Shown in pieces: positions 1 to 50,985 of a stretch of 64,000 bases of DNA. The translations under genes and the position numbers were made by a program. Position 1 is the first letter of the stretch. Each line of letters begins with the position of its first letter. The stretch spans positions 883,988-947,987 of the forward strand of contig CAJFCJ010000005.1 of the NCBI GenBank assembly GCA_904063045.1. The letters run 5' to 3'. This DNA is from Dimorphilus gyrociliatus. Lineage: Eukaryota > Animalia > Annelida. The notes under the pieces were generated by a model. It did no database searches and was not told the DNA's origin. It saw nothing but the letters and a program-made list of their open reading frames with translations.

Positions 1-662
1 TATCACTCACTATATACATATACTGTCAAGTTACCATGAAAAACTTTCGAGAAGAACGGATGACATTGTTGAAATTCAATTGAAAATAATTTGTACAATC
101 ATATCTCTTCTCTTGTGGATATACTATACAGTACTATACGCTCAAAAATACCCATATTAAATATATGCAAAAAAGGAACAACACAAACAGAACTTGAGTA
201 AAGAGAAAAGTAAATATGACAAAACACTTGCAATGTTTATCACTTTCTAATAAGAAAACAATTTATCATTTTCATTATCAATGATAGATTTAAAAATTTT
301 AGGAATATTTAATCCTTTAATAATCGGAGAGAAATATTTACACTAAAAGTAAAAAAACGAAAGAAATCAATAATACATCGTCTCATCAATTAACTCTGAA
401 TTGAAGAATACAAAGGTTAATCAATATTAATATTAAAAACACCAGTAACAACTACTTGTAGATTTATCAAATCAAAACATAACAAATCCCCAAAAATATA
501 AACATTACATTAAAAAAAACAACTGTCACCAACTTTAATCTATCTTTTCCTAAACCCACTACAACTTTAAAATTATACAATAGATATTCTCAAAATTCAA
601 AACGAACACTATTAAAAGATTGAATAATTTAATGTCATCATTAAGAACATTTCCAACAACAG

Positions 663-3600
663 ATTGTAAATTTGATGAATATCCAAGAAGATATCTCAGA
701 GGCTATGACAGCGAAAGTGTTAAAGTTGAAAGTAAAGACGAATGTTGGAAAATATGTGAACAGGATGATAATAAACATTGCCAGTAAGTTCGTCAAAAGA
801 TTGATATTTCTGCATTTTCCACAAGGAACATTACCCAATGTTCTCTTAAAATATTTCAGAGCTGCAGATTTTAATGGCAATAATAACATGTGTTATCTAA
901 ATTCTGGTACAAAGGATACATACAAAACTGCATTTTTAATTGCCAATAAATGGTCATATTTCCAGAAAAACTGTGGAGAAAAGCAAGGTAACGTTGTTCT
1001 GTTATTAAACATTACAAGATTAAAGCGTTATCAATATTTACTCAGGATGTGGACAATTTGAAACATTCCCCATGAGATACTTGAATGGTTTTGACCAATC
1101 TTCAATATCGGGAATAACCAAAGATCAATGTTTAGACATGTGTGCACAGGATAAAAATTGCTTGTAAGTAATCTGAAAAAACTAAACACCAATTCATTCT
1201 TTTCAAAAAATCATGACAACAAATTCAGATCATTTGACTACAACATTCCATCCAAATATTGTTATTTGAACCTTGAAACGAAAGATACAAAATATTCATC
1301 CTACATTGCAAACAAAAACTTTGAATATAATCATAAAATATGCAAAAACGAAACAAGTAATTTATTAAACACAAACAAAATATCAAATTGAATAATCAAT
1401 CATTTCTTCCTATTCTTTCAAAAAGGATGCGAACAATTCGAAACATTCAAAAACAGATATTTATATTTAAATGACTTGACAAATGTTGTCACTTCAACAG
1501 CAGATCAATGTCAACAACTTTGTGCTAAAGATAAAAAATGCCCGTAAGTTTTCAGTTCCCTAATCAGAAATTAATCTACAAAGTTTCTTGTCAAAAGTTC
1601 CGTCGATTATTATATTCCTTCGAAAACCTGTTACATTAATCTGAAATCGAAAGAAACGGCCAGGAAATCATATTTGGCAAACACAAACTACATTTATCTT
1701 CATAAATCTTGTAAAAATGAAGAAAGTAATATTATTTAAAAAATCAAACGCTTTACTGACTAATTTATGACATTTATATCCAGGATGCGAGAAAATATTG
1801 GAATACGAAAACAGATATTTGAATGGTTTCCAATTAACAAATGTTGGAAAACAAACTCTGGAATCTTGTAAACAAATGTGTATAAAAGATAAAGATTGCA
1901 AGTTTGTGATCCGAAAAGTCTTTATGTTTTCATTTTATAACGAATTGAAATTTTGAACAGATCAGCTGATTTTAACACTGCAAATAAGTATTGTTATATA
2001 AGAACTGAAACGAAAGATTCAAAGCCGACTTCATATTTGGCGTCCTCTTCTTATATTCATTTAGAAAATAATTGTGAAGTTGAAGAAAGTAAGTTTTTCA
2101 ACTAAACTCTTCTGTTACTTAACAATATTGAAAATTGCATTTACAGGATGTGAAAAGTTTCAACATTTTACACAAAGACGAATGAATGGTTATTCACGAA
2201 CCAACTTGTTGGTGAAGGATTTTGAAGAATGTAAGAAATTATGTGCTGAAGATAAGAATTGCCCGTAAGTTCTTTATTCATTTGATTGTCTTCTCTATTT
2301 GACCAGTTTCCATTTGACTCTTTAATTACAGTGCAGCCGGATTTAATAATGCAAATAAATATTGCTATTTGTACTATGAAACGAGATATACGAAGCCTTC
2401 TGCATACATCATTACTGCAGGATGGGAATATATTCATAAGAACTGTAATGAAACTGTAAAAGATAGTGAGTAGCATTATATTGTTCCTATTCAGTCAAAA
2501 TATTGATTACACCAAAAATCAGATTGCACGTCGGAGAGACATTTAACAAGATATTTGAGAGGAAATGACATAACACATGTTGCTGGACAAACTGAAGAAT
2601 CATGTAGAAAATTATGTGAAGATGATGACGTCACTCATTGCAAGTAAGTGTTTGCCTCGAAATCGTCAACTCAATAAGTGTTTTTATGATGTGTCAACTT
2701 TTCCAGATCTGCCGATTACAACTCTAACAATAAATACTGTTACTTGAATAAAGAAACGAAAGAATCGAAATCCTCTGATTATCTCTACGCGAATGGATAT
2801 GTTTATCTCGAAAGAACATGCAAGCCATCTGGTAACTTAATTCTGTTCTATTTCTATAGTTTTCCAATATATTACTTGTAACAAATTAGTCTATCCTGGA
2901 TGCAAAAAGTATGATTCGTATCCAAGAAGATATATCACAGCTTATAATATAGTTTCGGCAACCAAATACACATTGGCAATGTGTATGGATCTCTGTAACA
3001 AAGATGAGAAATGCTTGTAAGTGACAATTTTCATTTCTTTACATCATTCTCAACAGCAATTGTTGTTTATAGATCATTAGATTTCTACAATAAAACAATG
3101 ACATGCAACATAAAATCTGAATCGAAAGATACAAAGTACAGTTACTTTAAAACCGATGCCAATTCTGTTCATTATCATAAAAATTGTGAAGCAGAGACAA
3201 GTAAGAAATAGTGATGTTTTAAGAGAAGATTTTCATAAGTTCTCCTATCATTTCAGAATGTACCGATATTCAAGAATCACCATCGAGATATTTGAGTGCC
3301 TACATACATGCTTCAGTAGTAACAGATAGCTTAGAAGAATGTAAAGAACTTTGTGCTCAAGATCGAAACTGCTCGTAAGCTTTACTTATAAAGATATTAA
3401 ATTAAACGTTATCCCTTTTGAATTGAAATTTTGTGTTTCAGTGCTGGATACTTCGTTAAATCTTCCAAATCGTGTTCAATTAGTCTTTTCAATAAATATG
3501 ACAAACCAGCCTATTGGAAACTAGCTGCGGGATACATCTATATTCATAAGAATTGCTCTGTTCAACCAAAAGAAGGTTGGTTATTGATCATTTCTAATTT

Positions 3601-6600
3601 TTTAAATATCAAAATTTTGTATTCGGAAAATTGAATTGAATGAATAATTATACAGATTGTAAATTTGATGAATATCCAAAGAGATACCTTACAGGGTATG
3701 ACAGCGAAAGTGTTAAAGTTGAAAGTAAAGACGAATGTTGGAAAATATGTGAACAGGATGATATTAAATATTGCAAGTCAGTTGTTTTCTTCGAATTTCT
3801 CAATAATTACCATGTTTGATGTTTAAAGGGCCGCTGATTTCAATGGAAACAACAATATGTGTTATCTAAATTCTGGTACAAAGGATACATATAAAACATC
3901 ATTTTTAATTGCAAACAAATGGTCATATTTCCAGAAAAACTGTGGTGAAAAGAAAGGTAATTTAATATTTCGTTTTAAATCATAACTCCTAGTGAATATC
4001 GCTTACCTCTTGATAGGATGTGAACAGTTCGAAACTTTCCCAATGAGATATTTGAATGGATTTGACCAAGCGTCAATATCAGGAATATCAAAAGAGGAAT
4101 GTGAAGAAATGTGTGCAAAAGATAAAAACTGCTTGTTAGTATTATTTTGTAAAAAATTTTCTTTTTAATGCAAATTATCTTTGATATTTTTCCAGATCAT
4201 TTGATTTCTATATCCCTTCGAAATATTGTTATTTGAGCCTGGAAACTAAAGATACGAAATACACATCATATCTCTCTTCTAACAACTATGAATACAACCA
4301 AAAACTGTGCAAAAATGAGACAAGTGAGCTTTGCTAGTTTTTTCTCATATTTTCATTTCTTTAATCAAACAAAAATATAAAATATTTTTACTTTCAGGAT
4401 GCGAGAAATTCGAAAGATTCAATAATAGATATTTAAACGGAAATGATTTAACAAGTATTGTCACTGGAACTGTTGAGAAATGTCAGGAATTATGTGCTGA
4501 AGATAAATCATGCTCGTCTGTGTTACATCTTTTTTTGATTCGCATTGCATCATATAATGATATATCATTTAAATGTAAATTTTTAACTGCTCAATTATAG
4601 ATCTGCCGATTTTTATATACCTTCGAAAACTTGCTATTTGAATTTGAAATCCAAGAATACGGCTCGAACATCATATTTGGCAAACACAAATTACATATAT
4701 CTTCACAAAACCTGCGAAAATGAAGAAAGTAATATCACAAGTCCCTTTTATCTTTCTTATATGAAATAAAACATATTTCGATTACAGGATGTGACAAGAT
4801 ATTTGAATACGAACATAGATACTTGAATGGGTTCGAATTAACCAATGTTGGAAAACAAACATTGGAATCTTGTAAACAAATGTGTATAAAAGATAAAGAT
4901 TGCAAGTATGTGTAATTTTAATATAATTGAATATCTATTCTTTAAATGATCTGATCCGAAAAGTCATTATGTTTTCATTTTATAACGAATTGAAATTTTA
5001 AACAGATCAGCTGATTTTAACACTGCCAATAAGTATTGTTATATAAGAATTGAAACGAAGGATTCAAAGCCGACTTCATATTTGGCGTCCTCTTCTTATA
5101 TTCATTTAGAAAATAATTGCGAAGTTGAAGAAAGCAAGTTTTTCAACTAGACTCTTCTGTTACCTAACAATATTAAAAAATGCGTTTACAGGATGCGAAA
5201 AGTTTCAACATTTTACACAAAGACGAATGAATGGTTTTTCACGAACCAACTTGTTGGTGAAGGATTTTGAAGAATGTAAAAAATTATGTGCTGAAGATAA
5301 GAATTGCCCGTAAGTTTTAAACTTTTGTTTTTTAGAAAGTGTATTAGGTACGAACGAAATATTTCAAAGTCTGTAGTATTTTGGAGAAAAATCGGTAACA
5401 AAATTTAATAATTTGATTTTACTATAACCTACAGATTACTCTAAAAGGTTAACAAGCAGATCGTTACTTTTCTAATAAAATTAAGACATTTTTGTCCTCA
5501 AAAAAGACCCTAATATCTTTTTTCGTGTTGTCTAAATTTTCATAGTGAGCCCTTTAGATGTGATCCTTTAATTTTTCTTAAAGAATACTGTCAGATATTA
5601 TCACATTAATGATATATGAAGCATGTGAAATAATAAGCATCACTGAACTAGAAATCTCTGTTATAAAGAGACTAGTTAGAGGTCTCACATTGCCATACAA
5701 AATATGCATCTTTTTTCCTGGTTAAATTTGTGTAACTTTTTTCTTAACTACTTCTGATTATCAATTTTTCTATAGAGTTGATTGTTTCTCTCTACACTAT
5801 GAATTTCATATGAATTTTACATGAATGATAATAGAACATTGAACACAGCAGTTTCACAGCCATGGACATGAATTACCCTTATTTACACCTAAATTCTAAC
5901 GTAATGGCTTAACCAAACAAAATTTTTCACAAGGAAAAAGTACAAATAGTACAAGACAATTGAAGAGTGACATTAGCAACATTAGCATTAACTAGGCGTT
6001 TTTGAAATAAAAGCAAAGTTTATCAAATATTTCATTCGAAATTGATATTAAAAGAATCTTGACTATGATAAAATTTTCACACTTAGAGCCGCTGGTTTCA
6101 ACAATGGAAACAAATATTGCTACTTGTACTATGAAACGAGACATACAAAACCGTCTTCTTATATTATTACTGCAGGATGGGAATATATTCATAAGAACTG
6201 TAACCAAACTGTAAAAGATAGTGAGTTTTGTAATATTGTTTTGTTTCAATTAAAAAGTTGATTATTCAAAAAAACAGATTGCACATCAGAGAGACATTTA
6301 ACAAGATATTTGAGAGGAAATGACATAACATATGTCGCTGGACAAACTGAAGAATCCTGCAGGAAGTTATGTGAAGATGATGATGTGACAAATTGCAAGT
6401 AGGTTTTTCACTAGTTGAAAATAGTACATTCTAATTATTGTTAATTATCTTTTGCTACTAAAAATCACTTTACAATTTTAATGTGGTTTAGATCTGCCGA
6501 TTACAACTCTAACAATAAATACTGTTACTTGAATAAAGAAACGAAAGAATCGAAATCCTCTGATTATCTCTATGCGAATGGATATGTTTATCTCGAAAGA

Positions 6601-9600
6601 ACATGCAAGCCATCTGGTAACTTAATTCTTTTTGATTTCTACAGTTTTTTCAATGTATTACTTTTGACAAATCAGTCTATCCTGGATGCAAAAAGTATGA
6701 TTCGTATCCAAGAAGATATATCACAGCCTATAATATAGTTTCGGCAACCAAATACACATTGGCAATGTGTATGGATCTCTGTAATAAAGATGAGAAATGC
6801 TTGTAAGTGACAATTATCATTTCTTTACATCATTCTCAACAGCAATTGTTGTTTATAGATCATTTGATTTCTACAATAAAACAATGACATGCAACATAAA
6901 ATCTGAATCGAAAGATACAAAGTACAGTTACTTTAAAACCGATGCCAATTCTGTTCATTATCATAAAAATTGTGAAGCAGAGACAAGTAAGAAATAGTGA
7001 TGTTTTAAGAGAAGATTTTCATAAGTTCTCCTATCATTTCAGAATGTACCGATATTCAAGAATCACCATCGAGATATTTGAGTGCCTACATACATGCTTC
7101 AGTAGTAACAGATAGCTTAGAAGAATGTAAAGAACTTTGTGCTCAAGATCGAAACTGCTCGTAAGCTTTAATTATAAAGATATTAAATTAAACGTTATCT
7201 CTTTTGAATTGAAATTTTGTGTTTCAGTGCTGGATACTTCGTTAAATCTTCCAAATCGTGTTCAATTAGTCTTTTCAATAAATATGACAAACCTGCCTAT
7301 TGGAAACTAGCTGCGGGATACATCTATATTCATAAGAATTGTTCTGTTCAACCAAAAGAAGGTCGGTTATTGATAATTACTAATTTTCTAAATATCAAAA
7401 ATATGTATTCGGAAAATTGAATTGAAAGAATGTAATATACAGATTGTAAATTTGATGAATATCCAAGACGATATCTAAATGGGTATGATAGTGAAAGTTT
7501 GAGAGTTGAGAGTAAAGAAGCTTGTTGGAAACTATGCGAAGAAGACGATATTAAACATTGCAAGTCAGTTGATTATTTGAAATGTTGCTATATTTAACCT
7601 TTTTAATATTTATGAACTATTTTTGAAATTCAAAGAGCCGCTGATTTCAATGGAAACAACAATATGTGTTATCTAAATTCTGGTACAAAGGATACATATA
7701 AAACATCATTTTTAATTGCAAACAAATGGTCATATTTCCAGAAAAACTGTGGAGAAAAGAAAGGTAATTTAATATTTCGTTTTAAATCATAACTCCTAGT
7801 GAAAATCTTGTCTCTATAGGATGCGAGGAATTTGAAACATTCCCATCGAGATACTTGAATGGACTTGATCAAGCTTCGATATCATCAGTATCAAAAGAAG
7901 AGTGCCAGGAAATGTGTGCAATAGATAAAAACTGCTTGTACGTTTGTTTTCATTTAAGAACTAAATACATTGCTAAATAGTCATATCTTTCTTTCAGATC
8001 ATTTGACTATAACCTTCCTTCGAAATATTGTTATTTGAGCCTTGAAACTAAAGATACGAAATACAACTCATATCTCTCTTCTAACAACTTTGAATATAAT
8101 CAAAAACTTTGTAAAAATGAAACAAGTATATTTCATTCAAACTCCTTTAATTGTAGATTTTTAAAGATTTAATATCAATGAAATATCTTCATTTACAGGA
8201 TGTGAAAAATTTGAAAGATTTAATAATAGATATTTGACCGGAAATGATTTAACAAGTATTGTCATGGAAACAGTTGAAAAATGTCAAGAATTTTGCGCCA
8301 AAGATAAATCATGCCCGTTTGTATTATGTTTTTTTTAATAAATTTCATGTCATATTGTTTGAGAAATATTTTAAAATGTATTTTCTAAATTGCGCATTTA
8401 TAGATCTGCCGATTTTTATATACCTTCGAAAACTTGCTATATCAATCTGAAATCCAAGAATACGGCTCGAACATCATATTTGGCAAACACAAATTACATA
8501 TATCTTCACAAAACCTGCGAAAATGAAGAAAGTAATATCACAAGTCCTTTTTATCTTTCTTATATGAAATAAAACTTATTTCGATTACAGGATGTGACAA
8601 GATATTTGAATACGAACATAGATACTTGAATGGGTTCGAATTAACCAATGTTGGAAAACAAACATTGGAATCTTGTAAACAAATGTGTGTCAGAGACAAA
8701 GATTGCAAGTCGGTGAATTTAAATAGAATTGATTATTGATACTTAAAATGATATGAAACCAAATACAGATCAGCTGATTTTAACACTGCAAATAAGTATT
8801 GTTATATAAGAACTGAAACGAAAGATTCAAAGCCGACTTCATATTTGGCGTCCTCTTCTTATATTCATTTAGAAAATAATTGCGAAGTTGAAGAAAGCAA
8901 GTTTTTCAACTAAACTCTTCTGTTACTTAACATATATTGAAATTTGCATTTACAGGATGTGAAAAGTTTCAACATTTTACACAAAGACGAATGAATGGTT
9001 ATTCACGAACCAACTTGTTGGTGAAGGATTTTGAAGAGTGTAAGAAATTATGTGCTGAAGATAAGAATTGCCCGTAAGTTTATAGTTCATTCATTTGTTT
9101 TGCGTAATTGAGCAGTTTTCATGTTGCTGATATGTTAATTACAGTGCAGCTGGATTCAATACTGCAAACAAATATTGCTATTTGTACTTTGAAACGAGAA
9201 AAACTAAACCTGCTTCGTTTATCATTACTGCTGGATGGGAATACATCCATAAAAATTGCAACGAGACAACAAGAGATAGTCAGTTTTTCTGTTGAAACGA
9301 ATTCTATATCTTAGATAGCGTTTTTTATTTTTTTCTGTAGATTGTACTTTTGAGAGACAGCCATCTCGATATTTGAGTGGAAACGATAGAGTGTCTGTCA
9401 GCGGACAAACAGAAGAGTCATGCAGAAGACTTTGTGAAGAGGATGATGTTCATAATTGCCAGTAATTGCTTTAGGTTCAAAAGTTAAGTTTTGTTTAAGG
9501 AAGGTTTTATTTGTAGAGCGGCTGACTTTAATTCCAATAATGGCTATTGTTATTTGAATAAAGAAACGAAAGATTCGAAGCCTGGCTCGTATGTTTACGG

Positions 9601-10405
9601 AAGTGGTTGGGTTTATCTTTACAAGAGCTGCAAAGCTGAAGGTAATATGCTGTGAAATTGTAAGTTACTCAATAATTTCAATATTATTTTGTTGCAGTTG
9701 TTGCTGGATGTAAAAAGTACCGAGTTTTTCCGAAGCGAGTTATGTCAAGTTTTGTCATAGCAACACTCACAAAGCAAACTAACGAGACGTGTATGGAATT
9801 GTGTAACAAAGATAGTAAATGCTTGTATGTATCAATATTTTATAGAGTTGTAAAAACATGTATCATTTCTTTTCAAGATCTTATGCCTTTTTCCCGAATA
9901 AAAACACCTGCACTCTCTATTCGGAATCAAAAGATACGAAATACAATTATTTTAAAGCTGATATCACCGCCATTTATAATCTTAAAACTTGTAAAGAAGA
10001 GAAAGGTTTAAAGATTTTTATTGCAAATATAAAATTGTTTGTTTGTATTTTGTCCTAACTTTTCTACTATTCCTTTGTAGTTTGCAAAGAATTTGAAGTT
10101 TTCAACTCGAGATACATTTACAGCAATTACCAAACCAACTTTGTTGCAACATCTTTGGAAGAGTGTCAAGATGTTTGCGCTGCCGATAATGGTTGCTTGT
10201 ATGTATTGTAACAGTTGGAAAAACTTTCTCCGTATTGTTAGTGACGACTGCATAATTATGTCATTCCATACCAGGTCAGCTGATTTCAATGGAGCTAACA
10301 AGTATTGTTATCTAAGTACCACAAATATTAACAAAAAGAAAGCTTGGCGTATTGGTGCTGGTTGGACCTATTTACACAAAAATTGCGGCTTGAAGCGTCA
10401 AACCA
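663..10405 (+). repeat. Intragenic tandem triplication of an 8-module block (A-H): copy 1 663-3575, copy 2 3656-7361, copy 3 7443-10405 (eighth module diverged)
   Basis: The same module order ABCDEFGH recurs. About 2707-3650 and about 6492-7440 are near-identical including introns; 3829-3995 vs 7636-7800 and 4601-4880 vs 8404-8685 are near-identical. Confidence 0.92.
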
Positions 10406-13400
10406 GTAAGTGAAGAGTGTTTAAAGATTAATGTTTAAAAGAATAATAACCTTTTCAGACTGTACGTTCGTTGAATACAAGGGAAGATATCTGTATAATT
10501 TATATAAGGAATCTATTGGTGGACAAACTAGCGAAAGTTGTAAGGAGCTTTGCGATCAAGACGTTATCAATCATTGCAAGTAATGAAGTCTACATTAATG
10601 CACTATCTTTCATTTTCGCTCTATAATGATGCTCTTTTAAGATCCTCCAACTTCGCTATATCATCTAAAACTTGCTATTTGAACTACGAGAGTAAAACGA
10701 CTAAACCGAACGTTTTCTACGGTTCCGATAATTATATATATTGGCATAAAAATTGCGGAGAAGAAGAAGGTTTAATTAAAGATTTATAGTTGAATTTTGA
10801 ATGATTTCAAGAGGTTTCTTTTTTTCATCTTTAATTTTAAAGGTTGCAAGAAATTGATTGAATATCCTAAGAGATATTTGAATGGATTTGATCAAGCAAC
10901 GATTAATAAGCTATCTTTGGAGGAATGTAAATCAAGGTGTATTTTGGATTCTGCTTGTAAATCTGCCGATTACGATACAAAAAGTCAAACCTGTCGTCTA
11001 AGTCTGTTCAATAAAGACGACAAACCCGGCGAACTCAGAGTATCAAATGACGTAATCTACTTGGAGAAATCTTGTAAAAAACCCGAAAAACGTATGTGTA
11101 GATGTTAATTTTTTAAAACTGATAAAAACGGAAGCATTCTCATTATTTTCAGTTTGCGATAAGTTTGAAGAGTACCAATCAAGATATCTGGTTGGAAATG
11201 ATCAACACTCAGCAGCAGGCATAACGATCGATGAATGTAAAAAGTTCTGCGCTGAAGATAAACATTGCTTGTTAGTTATACACAACGACAATATAGATAA
11301 ACAATTCACCAAACTATCCAAATAACTGTTTTTTATCATTTTTCCTTTCACAGATCTGCTGATTATCACACACCTTCTAAAACATGCTATTTTAGTCTTT
11401 CGAGTATAGACAAACAAGGAAAATCTTGGGCTTTAGATTCCACTAGAATATATCTTCATAAAACTTGCGTACCGAGAGAAAAATCCAGTAATTAATTAAA
11501 CGTTCTCTTCCTCTTCCTAAACAACTATAATTTACAATTAATTAATTTCAGATTGCACATTTGTCGAACATAAATCGAGATATTTAAACAGTCTCTATAA
11601 GGAGTATGTTGCTGGACAGACGAAAGAAAGTTGTAAGGTTCTATGCGAGCAGGATGTTGTAAACAATTGCAAGTTTGTATTTCATCAATTTACCTCATTC
11701 CCTCTTATTTAATATACTTTTACGTTTTCTTACAAACGTCAAACAATAGGTCAGCTAATTACTATAATAAGTATTGCTATTTGAACTACGAAAGTAAGGA
11801 TACGAAACCAAAGAGTTATCTTGCCGGTGTGGGATATACTTATTGGGACAAAAAGTGCTCGAATGAAGATGGTATAAAACATAAAAATCTTAATACATTC
11901 ATACTTTAAAACATTCAAACTTTAATATTTGCAGTCTGTAAGACAATGATTGAGTACAAGTACCGATACATTTCCGGTTACAATCATGTTTGTCTCAACA
12001 ACCAAAATCTTCAGGATTGCAAAGACTATTGTATCGATGACAAAGCTTGCTTGTAAGTTTAAAAAGTAAATTTCTATGTGCTATAACTTAGAAACGTTGT
12101 TTCCATTTCTCTTCTAGATCAGCCGAATATTACACGAACAATAAGCAATGCTGTCTCAGCCACGAGAGTAAAGATACACAGCCGAAATCCTATATCGCCT
12201 CTCCTACTGTTATATACCTACAAAAGAGTTGTAAAAATGAAACTAGTAAGTTATTTAATTGAAAACGTACGCATAATTAATATTTAAATAATTTGATTTC
12301 TCGTAGGTTGCAAAAAATTCGAAATTTTCAATAGTCGAAGAGTAACTGGCTACGATCAAACATCTGTTGTTCTTCCTACTAAGGAGAGCTGCCAGAAACT
12401 TTGCGCCGAAGATAAAAATTGCCCGTACGTTGTCCTATTAGCTGTATTCTTTTACAGATTATTATTTCTATTCAAACTTTAATTGAAAATAAAGGTCTGC
12501 CGATTACGATATCGGTGGAAAGAAGTGCTATATCAATAAGGAAACCAAGAATACAGTTCACGCCAACTTTCATACTATTAAAAATTGGATCTACTTCCAT
12601 AAGACATGCGAAAATGAGACACGTAAACCTAAATTTTTAACAAATACAACTATTTCAGTATATCTCTGATGTTTTAGGTTGTACAACCTTCGAAGAATAT
12701 CCATTTAGATATATTAATGGTCTAGATCAAACTTCAATTGCTGGACAAACTAAGGAAAGTTGCTGGGCACTATGCAGTCAGGATAAGGATTGCCCGTAAG
12801 TTGGAAAATAGTTCAAATTGTAACAACAGTTACTAAATCTTACATTTCTTTCCATTCAGATCGGTCGACTATGTTGCAAGCACTAAAACATGCTATTTAA
12901 ATTCAGTAACTAAGGATACTAAACCAGCAAGTTGGTTATTAAGTAAATCATATACATATCTGCATAAGAGCTGCAACATTCAACCTGACGATGGTCTGTT
13001 TACAATAAAGTAAATGACATAGTTAAAAAAAAAACCAACTTGTATAACATTTAGGTTGTAAATTTGAGGAAATTAAATCTACTTATCTATCAAGTCTTGA
13101 CTCTAGTTGGATACATGGTCTAACTAGTGAACAATGTAGAGATCTATGCAAAAAGGACGATGTATTAAATTGCACGTAAGCTAGAGATAATTTATCAATG
13201 GTATTACATAGATATCTTTTTATATTAAAACATTTGTGAATTTTATATAGGTCTGCCGACTATAACACTGGGAATAAATGGTGTTATCTAAATAAGGGTT
13301 CAAAGGATACACATCCTGCAAATTACATATATAATAAAGACTTTGTTTACTGGCATAAAGATTGCGATAATAGACCAGGTACCTACTATTCGTAGTTAAT

Positions 13401-14972
13401 TCGAAAAAATCTATTAATATACTAATAAACCTTTTGATCAATAGTATGCAAGAAAATGATTGAATATAAATATAGATACATAAGTAAAGCAAGCTTCGTA
13501 TTCCCATCAATTAGCGGTCAAACAGCCGATAAATGCTCGAATGATTGTGCAGACAACAAGGCATGCTTGTATGTTTTTAAAATATTCAATAAAGCAAATT
13601 TGGAGGATAAAGATTAATCTCTATTTACTACTCTCCTAATAGATCTGCTTCGTTTAATTCAAAGACAAAGGTTTGCTATCATAGCTTCCATAATAAAGAT
13701 ACAGTTTATAAAGAATATAAATTGGGAGTTGATTGGACATATTTCCATAAATCTTGTACAGAAGAGCAAAGTAATTATTTTATCATTTCGCGAGTCTTAG
13801 GAGAATAATTGAATAACTTTCGTCTCCTTTTATAGAATGCAAAAATATGGAAAAGTTCGAATATAGATATCTAACGGGCACAGACGGTTTATCTGTAAAG
13901 GTTAATACGGTAGAGGAATGCGAGAAGATATGCTTTGAAGACAAGGAATGCCCGTAGGATATTTTTTAAAATCCGTGTAAAGGATACATTATATTTTAAT
14001 CGGATTTTCTTTTCTAGATCGGCTAATTATCTTACAACTACAAAAGTTTGCTATTTAAAAACCTCTGATAAAGACAAATCACCAAATAACTATAAAGCAC
14101 ATGCCAAGTATATCTACATCCATAAATCATGTTCAAAAGAGAATAGTAAGAATTATTAGTATAAATCTAATTATAAGTCCTAATCCTATCTTGTCTTAGG
14201 ATGTTCCCAATTCGAAAAGTTCGAATCACGTTATATAAGATCAAATGATTGGACCTATCTTTCAAGTCAAACTGAAGAAAGCTGCCAAAAACTCTGTTCA
14301 CAAGATATTAAATGCCAGTAAGATGAATGATTATAAAAGGAAGATAAATTCATTTTTTTGAATTTTCATTCTTTATTTTCTAATTAGCTCGGCTGATTTT
14401 AATCATGTCCGGAAAGTTTGCTATTTGAACAAAGGAGAGATAAATTCTATACCTAAGACTTGGGCCCTAGATAACAACTATATTCTTTTATTAAAGAACT
14501 GTAAACCATCCACAACGAAAGGTAAGAACGAATTATATAACTATTTGCGGCTGTCATTAAAATTCATGTTATCTGTCCATTAGAATGCAAAATGGTGAAA
14601 TATAAAGAAAAGTTCCTGAGAAGTTTCGATAAGGAAACTGTTAGAGGACAGACTGAAGAGAGCTGTATGAGATTGTGCCTGAACGATATTGTCAATAATT
14701 GCCCGTAAGATGATATTTTTAAAACTTGCTTGTATTTCTATTAAACGCAAAATTCTATAACCAGATCCGCTGAATATAATAAAAACTCCAAAATATGTTA
14801 TCTCAACTATGAAACAAAGGATACAAAGCCTCAAAATTATAAATCTTCCACTATCTACTCCTATTTCCATCGTGATTGTTCAGGTAAAGATGTAACTGTT
14901 TTGACAAAGGAACAATTAAAAAAAACCAATCTAATTAAATTTTTCATTAATTCAGGTCAAACTAATATCTAA
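663..14972 (+). CDS. Giant tandem PAN/Apple-domain protein, 36 modules, about 2,990 aa in window; 5' end (signal exon) presumably upstream of the window; probably secreted
   Basis: Spliced by hand with GT/GC-AG boundaries into one continuous stop-free frame. Exons: A1 663-783,860-987; B1 1046-1163,1229-1356; C1 1426-1543,1598-1725; D1 1784-1901,1961-2088; E1 2147-2264,2332-2465; F1 2523-2643,2707-2831; G1 2890-3016,3073-3200; H1 3257-3374,3442-3575; A2 3656-3776,3829-3956; B2 4017-4134,4196-4323; C2 4398-4515,4601-4728; D2 4788-4905,5006-5133; E2 5192-5309,6087-6220; F2 6278-6398,6492-6616; G2 6676-6802,6859-6986; H2 7043-7160,7228-7361; A3 7443-7563,7636-7763; B3 7820-7937,7998-8125; C3 8199-8316,8404-8531; D3 8591-8708,8769-8896; E3 8956-9073,9145-9278; F3 9341-9461,9517-9641; G3 9698-9824,9878-10005; I 10081-10198,10275-10405; J 10459-10579,10642-10769; K 10843-11091; L 11153-11270,11354-11487; M 11552-11672,11750-11871; N 11935-12052,12118-12245; O 12307-12424,12495-12622; P 12678-12795,12860-12993; Q 13055-13175,13251-13378; R 13445-13568,13643-13770; S 13836-13953,14018-14145; T 14200-14317,14388-14521; U 14584-14704,14765-14883; terminal 14956-14972 (GQTNI*). 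Each 80-85 aa module reads C..F..Y..RYL.G.D....C-x3-C-x5/7-C-x-SADY....CYL....K.....Y.HK.C, the PAN/Apple pattern. The many short + strand entries in the ORF track are these exons running into introns. Confidence 0.9.
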
Positions 14973-15405
14973 TTAATTCTGAAACAAAGAAACAAGAAAT
15001 CGATGAATATATTTAGACATTTTGAAAATTATTAAAATATCTAATCAATGAAATATTATTAAAAAGAATGCTATTATTCAATGATTATTCTCTTTCCTTC
15101 CTTTATGGGTCATACTTTCTTCGGGAATTCATCTAAAAAGAGAATGCAATCTATATAGTAAAAGAAACAGAAAAAAAAAACAATAAAATGATTGCTATTC
15201 GTACTTTTCTATTATCTAATTCAGTAGTTAAAACATTCATTACTCCCATAAACATTGACATTCACAGGATTAGAGGATGATATATAGTTTTGATAAGTTT
15301 ATTTATCTTTACAGTCTAAAGAGACAAATAATTTAAACCGTTGTAATTTATCTTCCTAATTTTTTATCTCTTCAACTCTTTCGTTCGTAAAAATTACAAG
15401 AGCAA

Positions 15406-15413
15406 TGACGTCA
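15406..15413. promoter_or_regulatory. Perfect CRE palindrome TGACGTCA, about 1 kb upstream of the CARD gene start
   Basis: Exact 8-mer in intergenic DNA; function not shown. Confidence 0.25.
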
Positions 15414-15635
15414 CAGTCGTTTTGGATAGGGAGGTGATTTTCTGTTGAATATAATTTAGAGTCGAAAAAGTAAGCAGATATTCTTTAACTAGAAACAATT
15501 AGATATAAATAATAATTTAAAGTTAACAATTAGCAAAAAAGCGAAATAGGAATTCAATGATTGAACTGTCATTCACCATACCTAATTTAATAGAGAGAAA
15601 TAGAAGACTAGCACTAATTGGATATAACTAAGAGC

Positions 15636-15695
<60 letters not shown>
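15636..15695. repeat. Compound (TA)n(GA)n microsatellite
   Basis: Directly visible; a similar compound repeat lies at about 27415-27470. Confidence 0.95.
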
Positions 15696-15705
<10 letters not shown>

Positions 15706-16413
15706 GAAAGATTAGGATTTAGTATAAAATAGATTTTCTAATAATAAATATAGTAAATAAGTTAGGTAATAAACTATATTAGGGGCAACTGCAAACTGTT
15801 ACTGTAATATATCCTTCATAGGCCTTGAATTTATACTTCTGGTCTAGTGTTTTCCTATCTAATCCCTACAATATTTTACGACATATTTATCAATATTATT
15901 ATCATTAATATAAGCTTTATTGCATAAATAAAAAGAGAGTTTTCTTCGTAATTTCTCAGAATTTATTACAATACTATCTTGAACTACGAAGAGAAAGTAG
16001 ACTTACTCCAAACTAGACCTAAAAGTTAAATTAATTAATTCTTTTATGTAAATATTGTTCCATATATTATTTTTTTTTTGAAGTTATAAATTTTGAGTAA
16101 TTAAGAAATTATTGTTTGTAAATCGTTGTGTAATAGATGGTGTTAAAGTAAACAATTGAAGAATGGTCGTATCTGATCGTTTACAGCGACTGCTGTCGTT
16201 AGATAAAACACTGATTAAAACCAGTAAATCCATATCAGATTTCACATTGCTCACAACTTACCAACGACTTGTTTGGACTCGTAGACCTTTCCCTTTCATT
16301 CTTCTATTTATACAAAGGTGAGCGGTGGCCATTAGCTGAGTATAAAAAATATTTATTAATTTTATCAGTCCGTTTTGCAGTTGGAGAATAGTAGAGAAGA
16401 AGAAGAAGAAATT

Positions 16414-17203
16414 ATGGACGAACTTGAATTGAGAGTTTTTAGAAAGAAAAGATCTGTTTTTGTTGAAAATGTTGAAATGAACAGCACATTAATGGAATCG
16501 TTGAAAAATCACGAAATATTTAATAGCGAGGAATGTACTGCAATTATGGTAGGCCTAATATTAAGTTACCACCTTTCTATCCTTTTACCGATGGATTATA
16601 TATTAGCAATAAAAGAGTTAAAAAAAAACAACAATGAATTTTTTTCTACTTAGAATGAAAGAACGCAAAATTCAAAAGTTATGAAATTTTATGAACTTTT
16701 AACAACAAGTTCAAAGAATGGCCTCTTTGAACAAATTTGCATGGCATTAATGAGATCTTACCCGTGGTTATCTAAGGAATTACAATCCGATTTAAAGAAC
16801 GAAAGGGGTAATTTGGTTATTGATCAAGATGTGCAAAAAGAAGCTTCCATGCTTGTTCACAGGTTTAAATTTCTCATAAAAAATTCAATTTTTGTTGAAT
16901 TGAAAAGCGAATAAGAAATTATAATTTTCCTATAGAAAATTCGGCACCAGTAGAAGATTATCGGAGTTAGAAAAGAAAGAAATACAAGATATGATTGCTC
17001 TTAAAATACAAATTTCTAAAGAAGAATGGAGAACCGAATTACAAGTAAATTTATGAATGTTTATTCATTTTAATAAGTCGTAGAGAAGAAGAAAACTAAA
17101 TAAAACTCTTTTTAAATGTAAATTAATCATATCTTATATGTTATATTGATAAATAGATCAGTAGGGAAGGGGGTTAATCGTAACTAGTCCGCAAAATTGT
17201 GTT

Positions 17204-17240
<37 letters not shown>

Positions 17241-18157
17241 AGTATATTATTGCCCTTAATATCTAGCCTTTAAGACGTTATACACACGCTAAAATACTTT
17301 TTAGTAAATATTAACTATATTTATGAAAATTTTAGGTCAATTGTAAAGAAATTCTTTAAATTCCAGGAACTTAGAGACGAACTTGACCATCAGTCGGCAT
17401 TGGAGAATTTAAAGAAGACTAAGTTGTCGGAAATTGCGAAAACTTTAACAAAGTTTATTAAAGATAATAAGGATGCTCTGTCGAATAACGCACACGATAT
17501 GGAATCGACAACTCAACTTTTACAATCAGCATCGGGTATCGTTAAAATAATCGATTCACGCGCAATATATTTGTAACATTTCTCCTTTTCAATCATTAAT
17601 AGACGACGAGGACCCTCTATCTCTTATTAGAAAGGAGCTAATGCTTATTCTAAAGAGATTTAATGGAGTAATTCTTGAAAAGAAAATCTTGAGCGAAGAT
17701 AGGGAGAAATGTCTCAAGGCATTGAATGTAAGTAAAGTAAATGGAAAAGGGAGAAAGTTTTTCTTGATAGTGTAATTATTTTTAGCTTCCAACCGACACT
17801 CCTTCTCTAAATGAGATATTAGACAACGAATTTACGTCACAAAAGAAGAAAATATCGACTTTGGAGAGTGAATTATTAGAAAAGGAAAAGACGTTGAAGC
17901 AAACGACAAAGGCTAAATGGGATCTCGAAGATTCAAATAGAGAAATGAATGAGAAAATGACTAAAATGAAAAATGAGCTTTCCGATAAAACCGTTAAGCT
18001 AATGAATTTTCAAGAAGACATTAGAAACAAACAAATTGAAATTGATGAATTAAAAAAGAATGTTGGCCAAAACCAACTGGAGAATGGGGCGGTAACCAAT
18101 CAAAGCAGACCCCAGTTAACTAGGCCTAAAAGTAAAAGTAAACTCAATTCGAAGTAA
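16414..18157 (+). CDS. CARD (death-fold)-like domain plus coiled-coil protein, 372 aa, 6 coding exons
   Basis: Exons 16414-16548, 16654-16862, 16936-17044, 17367-17535, 17603-17727, 17786-18157 total 1119 nt in one frame. The N-terminus MDELELRVFRKKRSVFVENVEMNSTLMESLKNHEIFNSEECTAIMNERTQNSKVMKFYELLTTSSKNGLFEQICMALMRSYPWLSKEL follows the six-helix CARD pattern (family assignment by eye). The C-terminal half is E/K/L-rich heptad sequence. A probable 5' UTR exon ends at 16317 (AG|GTGAGC), with acceptor at 16380. Confidence 0.78.
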
Positions 18158-19112
18158 ATTAAACTTACTCCAAGAAACTGTACGGTAATAAATAATTTAT
18201 AGGCTTAATGCTTATATTTACACAACTAAGAGTAGTATTTCCTTAATTTTTCCCTTATTACCCTTTACTTTATACACCTATCCTCCAACCATAGAAAAAG
18301 AACAATCTTGTATAGTATTTCATTATTTCGCCCTTTTTTTTCCGCTTTCAATAAACTCTACACAAATAATAAATTCAAAAAAACACTATCCTTTATAGTT
18401 GCAAACAAACTAAACTATCCTTATATTTTTAATAATACAAACAATAATTAATAGCTTCGTTATAGGGAAATTAGATAAAAAAAAAAGAAAAGTTTGTCAA
18501 TTGAAAAGTCATTTTAAACTTCTTTCGCTCTACTAACTACGAACCTTTTCTTCTCTTTTCTTCCCTTTTTATTTCCTCAATGGGCCTATAGTTACTGGTG
18601 AAAAAAAAAAGAAAAAGATCAATATTTCACCTAAACTAAAAAGAGGTAATGCATATTTTAAAGGGAAAAGAAATAAGTTATTATAATAATAATTATTATT
18701 ATTTTTATTAATATTGATTTATAATATTTTGTTTTTTAAAAAAAAATTTAATACTTTTTTTTATTTTTTTTAGAAAATTTTTGTTATAAGAAAGTTTTAA
18801 TTTTTTTTTTTATGGCACAGACATTTTGTTGTTGAATACAAAATATTATCATACTTTTTCTTCATTCTATTTCAACAGTTTCTCATTATTTTATTTATTT
18901 ATTTGATCTTTAACGGGCTAAAAATCAAAGATCTGTCTAGCTTCTATTCCTGTTTTCTCTCTCTCTCTCTCTCTCTTAGTGTTATTGCAGTACGTTCTAG
19001 TTTCGGCAGAGTTTTCCTTGAAAATAGCCGCAAAGACCGAAAAGAGTATGTAACTCTAGGGATATTTTTCTTTATGACTAGGCATCCTTCTGTCAATTTT
19101 ACTTGTTGTCGT

Positions 19113-19124
19113 TAGATGGCAGCA
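19113..19124. promoter_or_regulatory. CTCF-like motif TAGATGGCAGCA
   Basis: Resembles the CTCF core consensus; one of about 10 copies in the window (see findings). Confidence 0.4.
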
Positions 19125-21729
19125 CACACAACCCTTACACTTTACCGAACAGAAGCGTTCCTTTGTTCAACAGATGTACATATTTATAAAGGAAGGGTGC
19201 GAGGAAGAGAAGAGAAAAAAATGAAAGGCGATGACGTAACATTTTTCCCTAAGTAAATGCATTAAGATAAGAGGAAAAATAGAGAAAAGAAAGAGACCCT
19301 TATCTGTTGAAAAGTTAATTAATAGACAAGTGACAATAACGCTCTCTTTATAGTGTAATTAAAAGATAAATATGGAAAAAGCTTTTTCTGCCCGACCTTT
19401 TCAACTTTGATACGTAAAGTGACAGACTGATGAAATATAATCTTTCCTCGTTAAACGAATCGATTAACGATTTGTTATTATTATAATTATCAACAATTTA
19501 ATGGATGACTTATATATGTACACATAAAAAAAATGATTATATCTTCATTTTATTACCATGTTACTTTACTTTTGAACTTTTTTTTAATAATAAAGAACAT
19601 AACGCATAGATAGATAAAAAATGTTTAGTTGAATTTGTACAGATGTTATTCGTGTCCGCTTTTTTGTATTTAGTTATTAAATTTATATTGTTTATGTACA
19701 TAAGATTATAAACTGTACGGCTATTAACTTTTACAGTTATTCGAATTAGCTTTGTCCGACAATAATTGCTAACAAAATGGTTACGTAATGGTTATTACTG
19801 TCGGCTCATTGTAGCAACTTAATCCCATTATTCACTACATGTATGATTATGGACGAAACGGAGGAGAAAGAGAGGGGAAAAGTTGAATTTTAGCGCAAAT
19901 ATCCTTTTCGTTTTTTTTTTTTGTTATTTGTTTAAAGAATCCATAAACTATACAAATAATTATATAAAAGATAGCTTGAAGATATAACCAATAAACGATC
20001 AACTAAATGAATCGATTGGTTGATATCTAAATAGAAATTTACATAATTATCTTTATTTTATTCATTTAAAATTGGTTAGCTATCTTGCTCTCGATCTATC
20101 TATCTTCGTCCTATCCTACGCAAATCTTTGAATCGATTAATTAGACCTAGCTTATTAAGTCTAGTTAATACATAATTGAAAAGTGACTCTAGATAATTAA
20201 AAGTAGGTTTCCCTTTTTATATTTTCTACCATCTAAAGAAGGAGGAAAAAGTAATAAATCGTTATAAATTATGGATTATAATATCAAATTATTTCGTACT
20301 AAAAGCTTTTCTTTTATTCTTTTAATAGTTTAATTGAATAATAGAGAGAAAATGATGTGAAAAAATCTTTATTAAAATACAAACAAATGACTTAAAAGCC
20401 TTAATACTACGTTATAGAAATAATAGGGAAATATGGAAAGCTTTTTAACATGGACAAACGGAACGCAGCGCCTTCTATCTAATAAAAGAGATATTAAGAG
20501 GGGGAAAGTGGCAGTCGGTGCGGAGTACTTCTTTCAAAAACTGCACGTATCTACCGAGCTGATTAAAAAAGTTTATACTCTATTTATTTTTATTAACTGT
20601 AAACTGTATAATTACTTATTATCTCTGTTTAATTTTCAATTGATTTTTCTCATCTCTTCTCTCTCTCTCTTCTCTCTCTTTTCTCTTCTCTTTTCTTCTC
20701 TTTCTTTCTTTCTGCTTTTCTCAAAACAATTCAATTTCAACAACAACAATTTCAAGAAAATAATAAGAAAACAAGTTAGATCATTTTTTTTAAAAAAAAA
20801 AAACAAATCCCCTTTCCCACATAAACTCTATATAGAAAAAAGGAGGAGGAGAGGAAACTTTTATCAAAGAAAGATAAGATTCTTCATGAAAAGGTAAACA
20901 TCATTAAACTTTTTATAAGCTACTTAATACAGAAATCTTTTAATAAACATCTATTCTTCAAAAGCGTTAGAGGATTTAGTTAAATCGTTGAATTAAAGGT
21001 CATACATATTAATAAGCGAATAATTTAATATTTCGTCCACTCGGAATGAAATACCATAGATAGTAATAATATAACTAAAAAAATGCTAACAGATTATGCA
21101 AATTAATGTAAATTAGTAGAGAATTAATAAAATTATGTGTGTTGTGTGTGTTTATCAAAACATGTGTAGCTCTTTCATTTTCAATGAAATTGAGTTGGGT
21201 TTGTACTATTGAGTAATTCATTGTTTACTCGTGTCACTCTTCATTGATTTCATATGATTATTCTATCGATTACGAATAAAAAGTTTTTTTCCAACAAACA
21301 TCCCGCTTTTAAACGAAATCTATATTGCTGTTGGGCAGTGGAATTCAACGAATTGAAAAAATTCAATAATATCGCTGTCAACTGCAAAAGAATCTGCAAA
21401 AAAAAAAAATAGTGGACAACTTTTTTAAGAGAAACGATTGAGATTTCTGCATCGTAATGCGGGTGGAATTAAATTTTAAAGAATATATAAATTATATAGG
21501 TAAAATAATATTTGATCCTAGTTCAATTGTTGCTAACTATAAATCATTGTACAAAGATTTTTTCTTTTCCTCTCTTCTTCCCTAAAAATTTTCTATAGGC
21601 TTCGACTATAATAACAAAAATATTTTTTTCTCGTCTTGTCCATAATCGCTTATGTTTTTTTATTTTTGTATCTTTGAACGTATTAAGATTGAATGATATT
21701 CATTTTCTTCTCTTCCTTTCCATTTTAGG

Positions 21730-37181: not shown

Positions 37182-38216
37182 CTATACAGGGCTGTCATCT
37201 AATTGAAATAGTAATTTCTTTAAAGATTTAGCTTCAATCTCGAATTGATCCAGTTTTTGTAAGATATTTGTCAAAGATTTATTAGTCTTTGAATTTTTAT
37301 GGAATAGTAAATTCTTGAAGAACATGTCGTTGAAACGTTTCATATTAGTTTTTGCATTACTTCCAATACATCTGCTCCCAAGGCAATTAATATTATAGTC
37401 ACATTCTCCATCGTCGTTACAAGCCGGTTCATCAACCGTAAAATCATCTAAATCTGTTAATTTGATATGACTATCCTTAAGCAAAAAATGAGAATCTTTA
37501 AAATCGCTTATCCTAAGAGATCCCATAGCTGAGTTTTGTAAATAATCAAGAAAATCCGCAAGACTATATGCGGTTGTTAACCTTAATTTCCATGGCCAAT
37601 TTCGGATTGTTGATATATAGAAGCGAAGGGCATACTCGTAAACAGCAACCACTCCATGTTCGCTAAGTGACGTTGCTTCGGTTTCTTCACCTTTAACGCA
37701 GTATCCCACAAGTTTTAATAAATTCTTATGCGATAGTTGCTGGAGTAGTAATATTTCTTTCATTAATTTCATATTAGGAAAGGAGAAGCATCTATGTCTT
37801 TCCGAATGGCTTGCTGCGCCATTAGGTGAATTGAGAGCCGCCTTCTTGACACAAGTTTTAACATCTTTAACATTTCTTGTAACCATTTTAACGGCAATTT
37901 TCTCTTCAAGATACGAACCTAGGAAGACTTGTTTCGTTACGCCATGACCAATTTTCCTCTCAATTCTAATTTTTGGAATATTGGAGCAATTAAATTTATA
38001 TCGACTAATCGTTGGAAATGATTCTATATCATTAGCATGCTTTAATATAGATTGTTTTTTCTCAATTTTTGGCGTATAGTCTTCAACACTATCGTAAAGT
38101 CCATCTACTTTCGAGCAATCGTCGTTATATGACGCAAAATTGATGACTATGTGCCCCAAAAGAAGAGTAAAAAGGATTAAAAAAGACGCCATTTTCCAAT
38201 TATATTGTGATTTCAT
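37182..38216 (-). CDS. PKDCC: Extracellular (secretory-pathway) tyrosine kinase PKDCC/VLK homologue, 344 aa, intronless CDS
   Basis: N-terminal hydrophobic signal/anchor; IGHGVTKQV Gly-loop; IAVK; KLMKEILLLQQLSHKNLLKLVGYC; SAMGSLRISDFKDSHF; IKLTDLDD; Cys-rich EPAC...C...C...C. These correspond to the diagnostic PKDCC motifs (KEMVLL..L.HPNVL.LYGYC, SPLGS..LLDFRPRQF, LKVTDLDD). Confidence 0.92.
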   Translation of the reverse strand: MKSQYNWKMASFLILFTLLLGHIVINFASYNDDCSKVDGLYDSVEDYTPKIEKKQSILKHANDIESFPTISRYKFNCSNIPKIRIERKIGHGVTKQVFLGSYLEEKIAVKMVTRNVKDVKTCVKKAALNSPNGAASHSERHRCFSFPNMKLMKEILLLQQLSHKNLLKLVGYCVKGEETEATSLSEHGVVAVYEYALRFYISTIRNWPWKLRLTTAYSLADFLDYLQNSAMGSLRISDFKDSHFLLKDSHIKLTDLDDFTVDEPACNDDGECDYNINCLGSRCIGSNAKTNMKRFNDMFFKNLLFHKNSKTNKSLTNILQKLDQFEIEAKSLKKLLFQLDDSPV

Positions 38217-45500: not shown

Positions 45501-45957
45501 TTTCTAAAGGTGATTAGAGAATGAAGTGAAGTTAAAGTTTAATTCTAAATAAACGTTACTATAAACTATCTACTTAAAATCTGGCATGGTACTCTAATGA
45601 AATTCTCTATATTTAGTCGAGAAGAACAAGGACTCATTTTATACCAATCTTTCATTATCTATAGAAAATGTCAAAGGGTAACCGTTGTTCGTGAATATTA
45701 TGAATAATACATTAGATTAAAAGAAATATAGAATAATTATATGTAGGCTATTTTAATATCTTAATGGTTTGATAGACTAATTTCTTATCACTTTGAAAAA
45801 ATTTGAGGAAGTTATTAGTAATGTTATTTATTGAATTCGAATCATGAATGCAATAGCGATATACAAGTTTTAATTAAAAATAAGAATTATTAGTATTATT
45901 CCTATTTTCTTTGCCAAATTAAAAATCAATGTTAACTACCTGCTAACTTTACTTTGT

Positions 45958-50952: not shown

Positions 50953-50985
<33 letters not shown>

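Follow-up and report, generated by a model that had tools for sequence, protein, structure and literature searches.

The window analysed here is a stretch of 64,000 nt from the genome of the annelid Dimorphilus gyrociliatus (contig CAJFCJ010000005.1, or G000:C5, positions 883988-947987, + strand; G+C ~30%; assembly of 77.9 Mb in 349 contigs), and it probably contains the last 55%, the 3′ part, of a single very large gene. The whole gene model (G000:C5:871733-898959, + strand) covers 27.2 kb and joins 116 exons into a coding sequence of 17,628 nt with one stop, for a protein of 5,875 aa. Its domain order is a signal peptide (called by eye), about 1,000 aa of acidic Ser/Thr/Gly repeats, 58 PAN/Apple modules and a short non-hydrophobic tail. 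Our best overall explanation, to which we give a probability of roughly 0.55, is that this is a secreted protein made of signal peptide, repeat brush and 58 PAN modules that most likely cross-links mucus or another matrix. A preliminary description of the window had proposed a protein of about 3,000 aa consisting of 36 Apple modules and nothing else. That form has to be given up: 22 more modules, a mucin-like exon and a predicted signal peptide precede the 36, all within 12.3 kb 5′ of the window.

A two-exon cassette repeated along one frame

In a three-frame translation of positions 1-20000 of the window, two kinds of short open stretch alternate regularly. We found the first kind, the A exons, by a pattern scan (AG, two bases, Cys, then Cys-x3-Cys, a last Cys, two bases, GT); there are 36 of them at 663..14704, each with a B exon bearing two more Cys, so that the 36 modules first placed at 663-14972 are all borne out. 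Thirty-five of these are two-exon cassettes and one (10843-11091) is intronless. Introns between modules are always in phase 1 and those within a module always in phase 2, and position 663 is itself an internal phase-1 acceptor. All acceptors in the window are AG, and all donors are GT except for GCAAGT at 5134 and 8897, which mark GC-AG introns.

Spliced together, the window part comprises 71 exons, 9,038 nt and ~3,012 codons; the single frame, free of internal stops up to the TAA at 14970-14972 and ending in GQTNI*, is thereby confirmed. The coordinates and frame given in the preliminary description stand, while its count of 72 exons does not. We count 71, since one module (10843-11091) is a single exon; a 72nd exon (14956-14972) arises only if the optional intron 14884-14955 is removed.

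Upstream of the window we examined 20 kb of sequence (segments L002 and L003, with coordinates local to each segment). PAN cassettes of the same design continue there, 22 of them from L002:929 to L002:9449, so that the 58 modules of the model are divided into 22 upstream of the window and 36 inside it. Over the full model the splice sites are 112 GT and 3 GCAAGT donors with AG at 115 of 115 acceptors, the median intron is 64 nt, and the 58 A/B cassettes and exon 1 join in one frame with a stop only at its end. A chance origin of the array can be excluded because 115 consecutive splice sites are phase-compatible and 58 units have six Cys. The 5′ border of the gene was set by its neighbour, since the next gene upstream lies on the opposite strand.

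The N-terminal repeat exon

Exon 1 (3,112 nt, L003:7746 to L002:857) has a phase-1 GT donor ~70 nt before the first PAN exon, and thus matches the upstream signal-peptide exon ending in phase 1 that the preliminary description had predicted. It opens with Met, a short polar stretch, a 13-residue hydrophobic core, a small residue and an acidic mature end, which, judged by eye, is predicted to be a cleavable signal peptide.

The exon goes on to encode ~50 tandem 19-aa repeats of the TTSSSEGQELTTPSSGGQG type, for which Tandem Repeats Finder gives a period of 57 bp, 36.2 + 13.6 copies and a four-repeat higher order. The repeat region is 22.5% Ser, 21% Thr, 21% Gly, 12% Glu, 4.9% Pro and 0.5% Lys (Ser+Thr 43%), with 62 Ser-Gly dipeptides and 13 SGxG motifs, and it matched no Pfam family. 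Its composition would fit a mucin-like or proline/threonine/serine (PTS) domain, and the Ser-Gly and SGxG sites in their acidic context are suggestive, though only that, of glycosaminoglycan (GAG) attachment.

The modules are PAN/Apple domains

Three lines of evidence support the assignment of the modules to the true PAN/Apple domains: a Pfam match, a cysteine pattern and a structure model. First, the intronless module (10845-11090) matches Pfam PAN_1 (PF00024) with 52.9 bits and an E-value of 3.4e-14 over profile positions 4-76 of 76, where the gathering cut-off of the family is 21.4 bits. In the PAN_1 alignment the A exons take profile positions 1-37 and the B exons 39-76, and when each exon of the window is scanned by itself, the family is matched by 30 of the 35 A and 27 of the 35 B exons; this exon-by-exon Pfam scan of the window found no recurring family other than PAN.

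Second, six Cys columns are invariant in all 58 modules, and 57 of the 58 have exactly six Cys. Their spacing, as read from sequence alone, is apple-like. The apple subtype has six Cys, the first and last at the ends of the module, with disulfides C1-C6, C2-C5 and C3-C4. Modules are 81-85 aa long and the linkers between them are only a few residues; a profile of the module covers the whole model except exon 1 and a 28-aa tail.

Third, an AlphaFold (AF2) model of the intronless module, computed from an alignment of 18 natural relatives, reached a pLDDT of 88.7 and a pTM of 0.76, with strands and one helix in the expected PAN order; the PAN fold is a five-stranded sheet packed on one helix. A sequence search of PDB chains with the module gave nothing significant (MIC4 at E 0.19, and chance matches to AhR), and for this reason we turned to a fold search. 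The top Foldseek matches of the model are the HGF N domain, the plasminogen PAN domain (TM-score 0.76, root-mean-square deviation 1.8), the Sarcocystis lectin SML-2, the factor XI (FXI) and prekallikrein apples and leech antiplatelet protein (LAPP), with a probability of 1.00 for HGF N, plasminogen PAN, SML-2, the FXI apple and LAPP. The PAN/Apple identity first read from the window is thus upheld by profile, fold and six-Cys pattern alike.

Duplication history and selection

The array contains four units of eight modules, each roughly 3 kb: U1 at 551-3,494 nt before the window, U2 at 663-3575, U3 at 3656-7361 and U4 at 7443-10405. Exon identity is 97% between U1 and U2, 91% for U3 against U1 or U2 and 75-76% for U4 against U1 or U2; the corresponding intron identities are 90%, 77-79% and 63-64%. 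U1 and U2 lie on either side of a gap of 1,213 nt, to which we return below, and differ by 56 exon and 87 intron substitutions, with 51 gapped alignment columns in the introns. Between these two units synonymous divergence (Ks) is 0.11 and non-synonymous divergence (Ka) is 0.011, for a Ka/Ks of 0.10, and over all six unit pairs Ka/Ks is 0.10-0.18; the units are under purifying selection. This conservation of coding sequence on both sides of the gap fits a secreted product of one transcript. The array would have grown by tandem duplication of the 8-module unit to its four copies, and since exon phases are symmetric (1-2-1), every duplication or skip of a module stays in frame.

Several other traces of this history can be seen. 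The upstream gene modules 1-14 (L002:929-6422) show a periodicity of older date: modules 2-5 pair with modules 7-10 at 49-71% identity, a pairing that points to an earlier 5-module duplication; in gene modules 12-14 the end of the 8-module unit is present once more, as a partial copy. At the end of the fourth module in every unit, the intron behind the B exon starts with GCAAGT in U1 (L002:7929), U3 (5134) and U4 (8897) and with GTAAGT in U2 (2089), and is a case of a GT/GC donor switch between young paralogous introns. The 777-nt intron at 5310-6086 has stretches 72-77% identical to three places in the genome (on contigs C26, C7 and C45). It is probably the remnant of a dispersed repeat, which would explain its unusual length.

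One gene or two

The weak point of the single-gene model is the gap between gene modules 22 and 23, which the model treats as a 1,213-nt intron from L002:9450 to window position 662 (window part 1-662, + strand, acceptor CAACAG at 657-662). Module 22 has a GTGAGT donor in phase 1 that falls on the codon at which the paralogous units also end (3575 and 7361), and the exon at window 663 is in phase 1 directly after CAACAG. The succession of module types in the super-repeat carries on from one side of the gap to the other. The gap contains no PAN exon, no open reading frame (ORF) of more than 55 aa and no AATAAA, and its sequence is joined without Ns. It is single-copy in the genome, on which ground we rejected a transposon origin for the intron; pieces of a dispersed repeat occur only in the 777-nt intron. 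The 36-module part downstream has no signal peptide of its own. The ends of the long intron resemble those of the paralogous 80-nt introns weakly, and we made no use of this likeness as support. Taken together, we consider it quite likely that modules 22 and 23 are joined across this intron in a single gene, and we infer a single transcript.

Several points weigh against a single large gene with the product proposed here. The intron is 19 times the median intron length; left unspliced, the upstream frame stops two codons past the donor; and an in-frame ATG lies at window 632. A protein word-index search with the exon past the gap (632-781) found no junction-spanning fragment, a weak negative on account of its length window. 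A HMMER scan of 1.84 billion representatives with the module returned 206 matches, and the product of the present locus is not among them, the best identity to the model being 50% over 34 residues. On the side of function, glycosylation (that of the repeat region included), ligands and site of expression are purely what we infer, and PAN domains bind very different partners in different proteins.

One might hold, then, that there are two genes: an upstream one with the signal peptide, the repeats and 22 PAN modules, which ends at L002:9449 by read-through, and separate from it the 36 modules of the window, either as a transcription unit of their own or as a decaying duplicate, starting at ATG 632 without a signal peptide. 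Such a layout is formally possible because of the stop after the unspliced donor and the ATG ahead of window 663, and a gap far above the 64-nt median intron speaks for it too. It would, however, leave a product from 632 that lacks a signal peptide yet carries 216 structural cysteines. The units flanking the gap and those further downstream are under strong purifying selection (the Ka/Ks of 0.10-0.18 given above), and all 71 downstream exons keep their frame and splice sites, unlike a dead copy. The GTGAGT donor stands in the phase of the paralogous junctions, and the gap offers no AATAAA. We regard two genes as improbable, and prefer the single-gene model.

Two further alternatives concern the array itself. 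One is that its cassette layout serves regulated isoform diversity; exon skipping would then yield chains of many lengths or chimeric A/B modules. The invariant phases over 57 split modules, which keep the skipping of a whole module always in frame, are in favour of this, but tandem exon duplication is expected to leave symmetric phases behind even where they serve no function, and chimeric modules would have to pair Cys from diverged halves; we find the idea quite improbable. That the repeat number is an assembly artefact, with U1 and U2 as two haplotypes or mis-joined reads, the gap as a faulty join and the real gene shorter, is suggested by the 97% exon identity of these units and by the odd long intron exactly between them, but is highly improbable given that U1 and U2 differ by far more synonymous than non-synonymous change, as diverged paralogues do, that U3 and U4 extend them into the graded identity series (91%, 76%) expected of successive duplications, and that the gap is single-copy and joined without Ns.

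The 3′ end

The single-gene model ends shortly after the last PAN module. Its optional intron at 14884-14955 (GTAAAG...TTCAG) is 72 nt long, in frame and stop-free, so the protein ends in GQTNI* whether or not it is spliced. Candidate polyadenylation signals on the + strand (ATTAAA at 15031 and 15058, AATAAA at 15182) lie within 60-210 nt of the stop, and 14973-16300 has neither long ORFs nor domain matches. The next gene downstream on the + strand encodes a coiled-coil protein without a PAN domain. In the intergenic DNA, (TA)14 and then (AGAG)12 microsatellites occupy 15636-15711.

The preliminary description had noted that the protein has no transmembrane, ZP or protease domain, and our searches in and after the array agree. 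No segment of the model is hydrophobic enough for a membrane helix (threshold of 1.6 mean Kyte-Doolittle over 19 residues). No ZP domain was matched in the window exons or in ten open stretches at 15026-16388, and a trypsin-like protease domain was absent from the exon-by-exon scans. In those ten stretches Pfam gave nothing above a family cut-off, the best being a weak, sub-threshold match to DUF6007 (E 0.067).

PAN-ZP proteins carry a C-terminal ZP domain, usually with a transmembrane segment or a cleavage site. By analogy, an overlooked 3′ exon, joined to the phase-1 donor at 14884, could anchor the present protein, which would then be a surface receptor or a cuticlin. The donor (GTAAAG) is a good one, and in an open stretch of compatible phase at ~15067-15156 basic residues come after a mildly hydrophobic run. 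We rejected this stretch as a transmembrane exon: its mean Kyte-Doolittle value is 1.04 over 19 residues, below the threshold, it has no Pfam match, and AT-rich non-coding DNA often gives such runs. The ten open stretches likewise are without a Pfam match above cut-off, the 72-nt intron to 14956 fits the local intron size, and the annotated paralogues end directly after their last PAN module. We conclude that an anchored form is highly improbable.

Relatives and known systems

The best matches to the module among the 206 are PAN-only secreted proteins of D. gyrociliatus itself, at ~30% identity. Since these paralogues from the same genome are present and the product of the locus was not found, the gene appears to be missing from the public protein set, and may be absent from the annotation. 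Two of the paralogues, DgyrCDS12445 (CAD5124145.1) and DgyrCDS12447 (CAD5124147.1), resemble the present protein in having a signal peptide and back-to-back PAN_1 modules and in ending after the last module, but they have 11-14 modules, 1,000-1,200 aa and no N-terminal repeat brush. Their modules are mostly unsplit by introns, in open frames of 500-1,200 aa, whereas all but one of the present ones are split. Both genes cluster on another contig (G000:C20), to which DgyrCDS12445 maps exon by exon at 99% identity. A third PAN-only paralogue model, DgyrCDS12444 (CAD5124144.1; P0004), has a DnaJ-C28 conserved domain at its C-terminus (residues 1150-1215), which suggests that two neighbouring genes were fused in annotation.

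Two larger proteins come closer in size. DgyrCDS10690 (CAD5122242.1, 3,398 aa) is likewise a large secreted D. gyrociliatus protein with more than 20 PAN modules, but SUEL-lectin and F5/8 type C (discoidin) domains accompany these modules, which match PAN_4 as well, and a mucin-like exon is lacking. The European Nucleotide Archive (ENA) protein P0002 (5,928 aa) is of similar size, has at least 53 PAN-like six-Cys modules and no transmembrane segment, and a scan with the module profile left no long PAN-free stretch in it; it differs in its ~19% identity, in charged linkers of ~40 aa rich in Lys, Glu and Ser, and in having neither a signal peptide nor a brush in its model.

The nearest concept outside this set is LET-653 of C. 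elegans, a matrix protein that combines PAN, mucin-like and ZP regions. It and the PAN-ZP matrix proteins NompA and NOAH-1/2 are secreted glycoproteins of apical matrices in which PAN modules occur with a mucin-like Ser/Thr-rich region, but each has 2-5 PAN modules and, at its C-terminus, a ZP domain for polymerisation, where the present protein has 58 and no ZP; it is therefore not a member of the PAN-ZP family, which is defined by a C-terminal ZP. Near-pure tandem apples are found in soluble, multivalent, glycan-binding adhesins of apicomplexans, TgMIC4 (6 apples), EtMIC5 (11) and Sarcocystis SML-2. These adhesins come from protists, have no more than about 11 modules and lack a mucin region, and their sequence similarity to the present protein is not significant; the likeness to MIC4 and SML-2 is at the level of fold only (TM-score 0.68 for SML-2 against the module model).

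The apples of FXI and prekallikrein, HGF, the plasminogen PAN domain and LAPP have the fold in common with our modules, together with the six-Cys (apple) or core four-Cys (PAN) pattern. FXI, prekallikrein, HGF and plasminogen carry 1-4 modules on kringle or serine-protease domains, neither of which the present protein has; nor does it have the four apples with a trypsin-like protease that characterise the factor XI/prekallikrein family. LAPP shows that PAN modules of annelids can bind matrix collagen. Exon 1, for its part, may be compared, as far as its translated repeats go, with the CS1 region of aggrecan and with gel-forming mucins, since it has tandem 19-aa (57-bp) acidic Ser-Gly repeats with ~43% Ser+Thr beside binding modules; there is no sequence homology to them, and no G1/G2/G3, VWD or cystine-knot domain.

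PAN arrays, mucin-like repeats and tandem exon duplication are each already known. The preliminary description knew of no protein like this one, which holds for the combination, in that literature searches on annelids and on invertebrate adhesives turned up no described protein joining a mucin-like brush to dozens of PAN modules. It does not hold for long PAN chains as such, given the PAN-only paralogues, the 3,398-aa PAN protein and the 5,928-aa PAN chain. The genome has at least 146 PAN_1 matches, in several arrays. On the − strand of G000:C42, at 44583-51807, ~25 PAN_1 matches follow one another at regular intervals of ~305 nt, every one of them in a separate short open frame, and further PAN arrays lie at C16:575-590 kb and C7:13-23 kb.

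Coordinates of the window modules and neighbouring features

All modules of the window are on the + strand; window modules 1-36 are gene modules 23-58 in the same order, and the coordinates given are those of the A exon and then the B exon. Unit U2 (modules 1-8, gene modules 23-30) starts with module 1 (663-783, 860-987), followed by modules 2 (1046-1163, 1229-1356), 3 (1426-1543, 1598-1725), 4 (1784-1901, 1961-2088; with a GT donor where the paralogous units have GC), 5 (2147-2264, 2332-2465), 6 (2523-2643, 2707-2831) and 7 (2890-3016, 3073-3200), and ends with module 8 (3257-3374, 3442-3575).

Unit U3 (modules 9-16, gene modules 31-38) runs from module 9 (3656-3776, 3829-3956) through modules 10 (4017-4134, 4196-4323), 11 (4398-4515, 4601-4728) and 12 (4788-4905, 5006-5133), the last followed by the GC-AG intron with GCAAGT at 5134. 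Module 13 (5192-5309, 6087-6220) holds the 777-nt internal intron with its pieces of dispersed repeat, and the unit is completed by modules 14 (6278-6398, 6492-6616), 15 (6676-6802, 6859-6986) and 16 (7043-7160, 7228-7361).

Unit U4 (modules 17-24, gene modules 39-46) is made up of modules 17 (7443-7563, 7636-7763), 18 (7820-7937, 7998-8125), 19 (8199-8316, 8404-8531), 20 (8591-8708, 8769-8896; then the GC-AG intron with GCAAGT at 8897), 21 (8956-9073, 9145-9278), 22 (9341-9461, 9517-9641), 23 (9698-9824, 9878-10005) and 24 (10081-10198, 10275-10405).

After the last unit come modules 25-36 (gene modules 47-58). Module 25 (10459-10579, 10642-10769) precedes module 26, the single exon 10843-11091, the only intronless module and the one used for searching and folding. 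Next are modules 27 (11153-11270, 11354-11487), 28 (11552-11672, 11750-11871; its B exon has a shorter loop) and 29 (11935-12052, 12118-12245; the only module with 8 Cys), then 30 (12307-12424, 12495-12622), 31 (12678-12795, 12860-12993), 32 (13055-13175, 13251-13378), 33 (13445-13568, 13643-13770), 34 (13836-13953, 14018-14145) and 35 (14200-14317, 14388-14521). Module 36 (14584-14704, 14765-14972) includes the C-terminal tail and the TAA at 14970-14972.

Some neighbouring features were also seen. The upstream neighbour at L003:4613-5596 (− strand) encodes, in a single ORF, a protein of 327 aa that begins with a hydrophobic stretch and has one PAN_1 domain (22.5 bits), and L003:3953-4313 (+ strand) resembles a two-exon PAN module, beside Cys-rich ORFs at L003:2331-2849. 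Far downstream in the window, 37182-38216 (− strand) is a single-exon ORF of 344 aa with a hydrophobic N-terminus and a kinase-like middle.

Proposed function and meaning

With the sequence architecture, the PAN identity of the modules and the purifying selection on them established, a secreted multivalent binder is what we take to be the best reading of the predicted protein. This retains one half of the preliminary description, which saw a multivalent secreted adhesive or lectin, without its apple-only form of 36 modules. The protein would be secreted, and its N-terminal repeats would be heavily O-glycosylated (mucin-type) or would bear GAGs, giving a brush that is hydrated and negatively charged. 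The 58 PAN modules, locked by disulfides, would form a long chain of beads, ~0.2 micrometre in length as estimated from typical domain size, that offers dozens of weak protein- or glycan-binding sites. In gliding mucus, gland secretion, cuticle, egg cocoon or a similar secreted matrix, such a molecule could serve as a cross-linker or anchor; alternatively, it could agglutinate particles or microbes.

D. gyrociliatus moves by gliding on a ventral field of cilia, possesses glands of several types and deposits its eggs in cocoons (PMC5101659). The protein may belong to any one of mucus, gland secretion, cuticle and cocoon, and we do not choose among them. A bolder version would have one mRNA encode both a GAG- or mucin-bearing brush and the longest PAN/Apple array so far known from an animal (58), missing from the public gene set, as the main cross-linker of mucus or cocoon, with a length tunable in evolution and possibly by exon skipping; as a whole we hold this to be unlikely.

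If the single-gene model is true, the protein is among the largest of a 78-Mb animal genome, and a case of extreme module multiplication, with 58 copies and four 8-module units still under purifying selection. The genome of D. gyrociliatus is noted for its compactness. The finding opens no long-standing question, and belongs to a broader picture in which PAN-only proteins are greatly expanded in D. gyrociliatus; to our knowledge nobody has studied them. In the protein proposed here two ideas for building a matrix, the glycan brush and the multivalent lectin-like rod, would be united in one chain. The protein is also a concrete candidate where the molecules behind the mucus, gland secretions or cocoons of meiofaunal annelids are sought.

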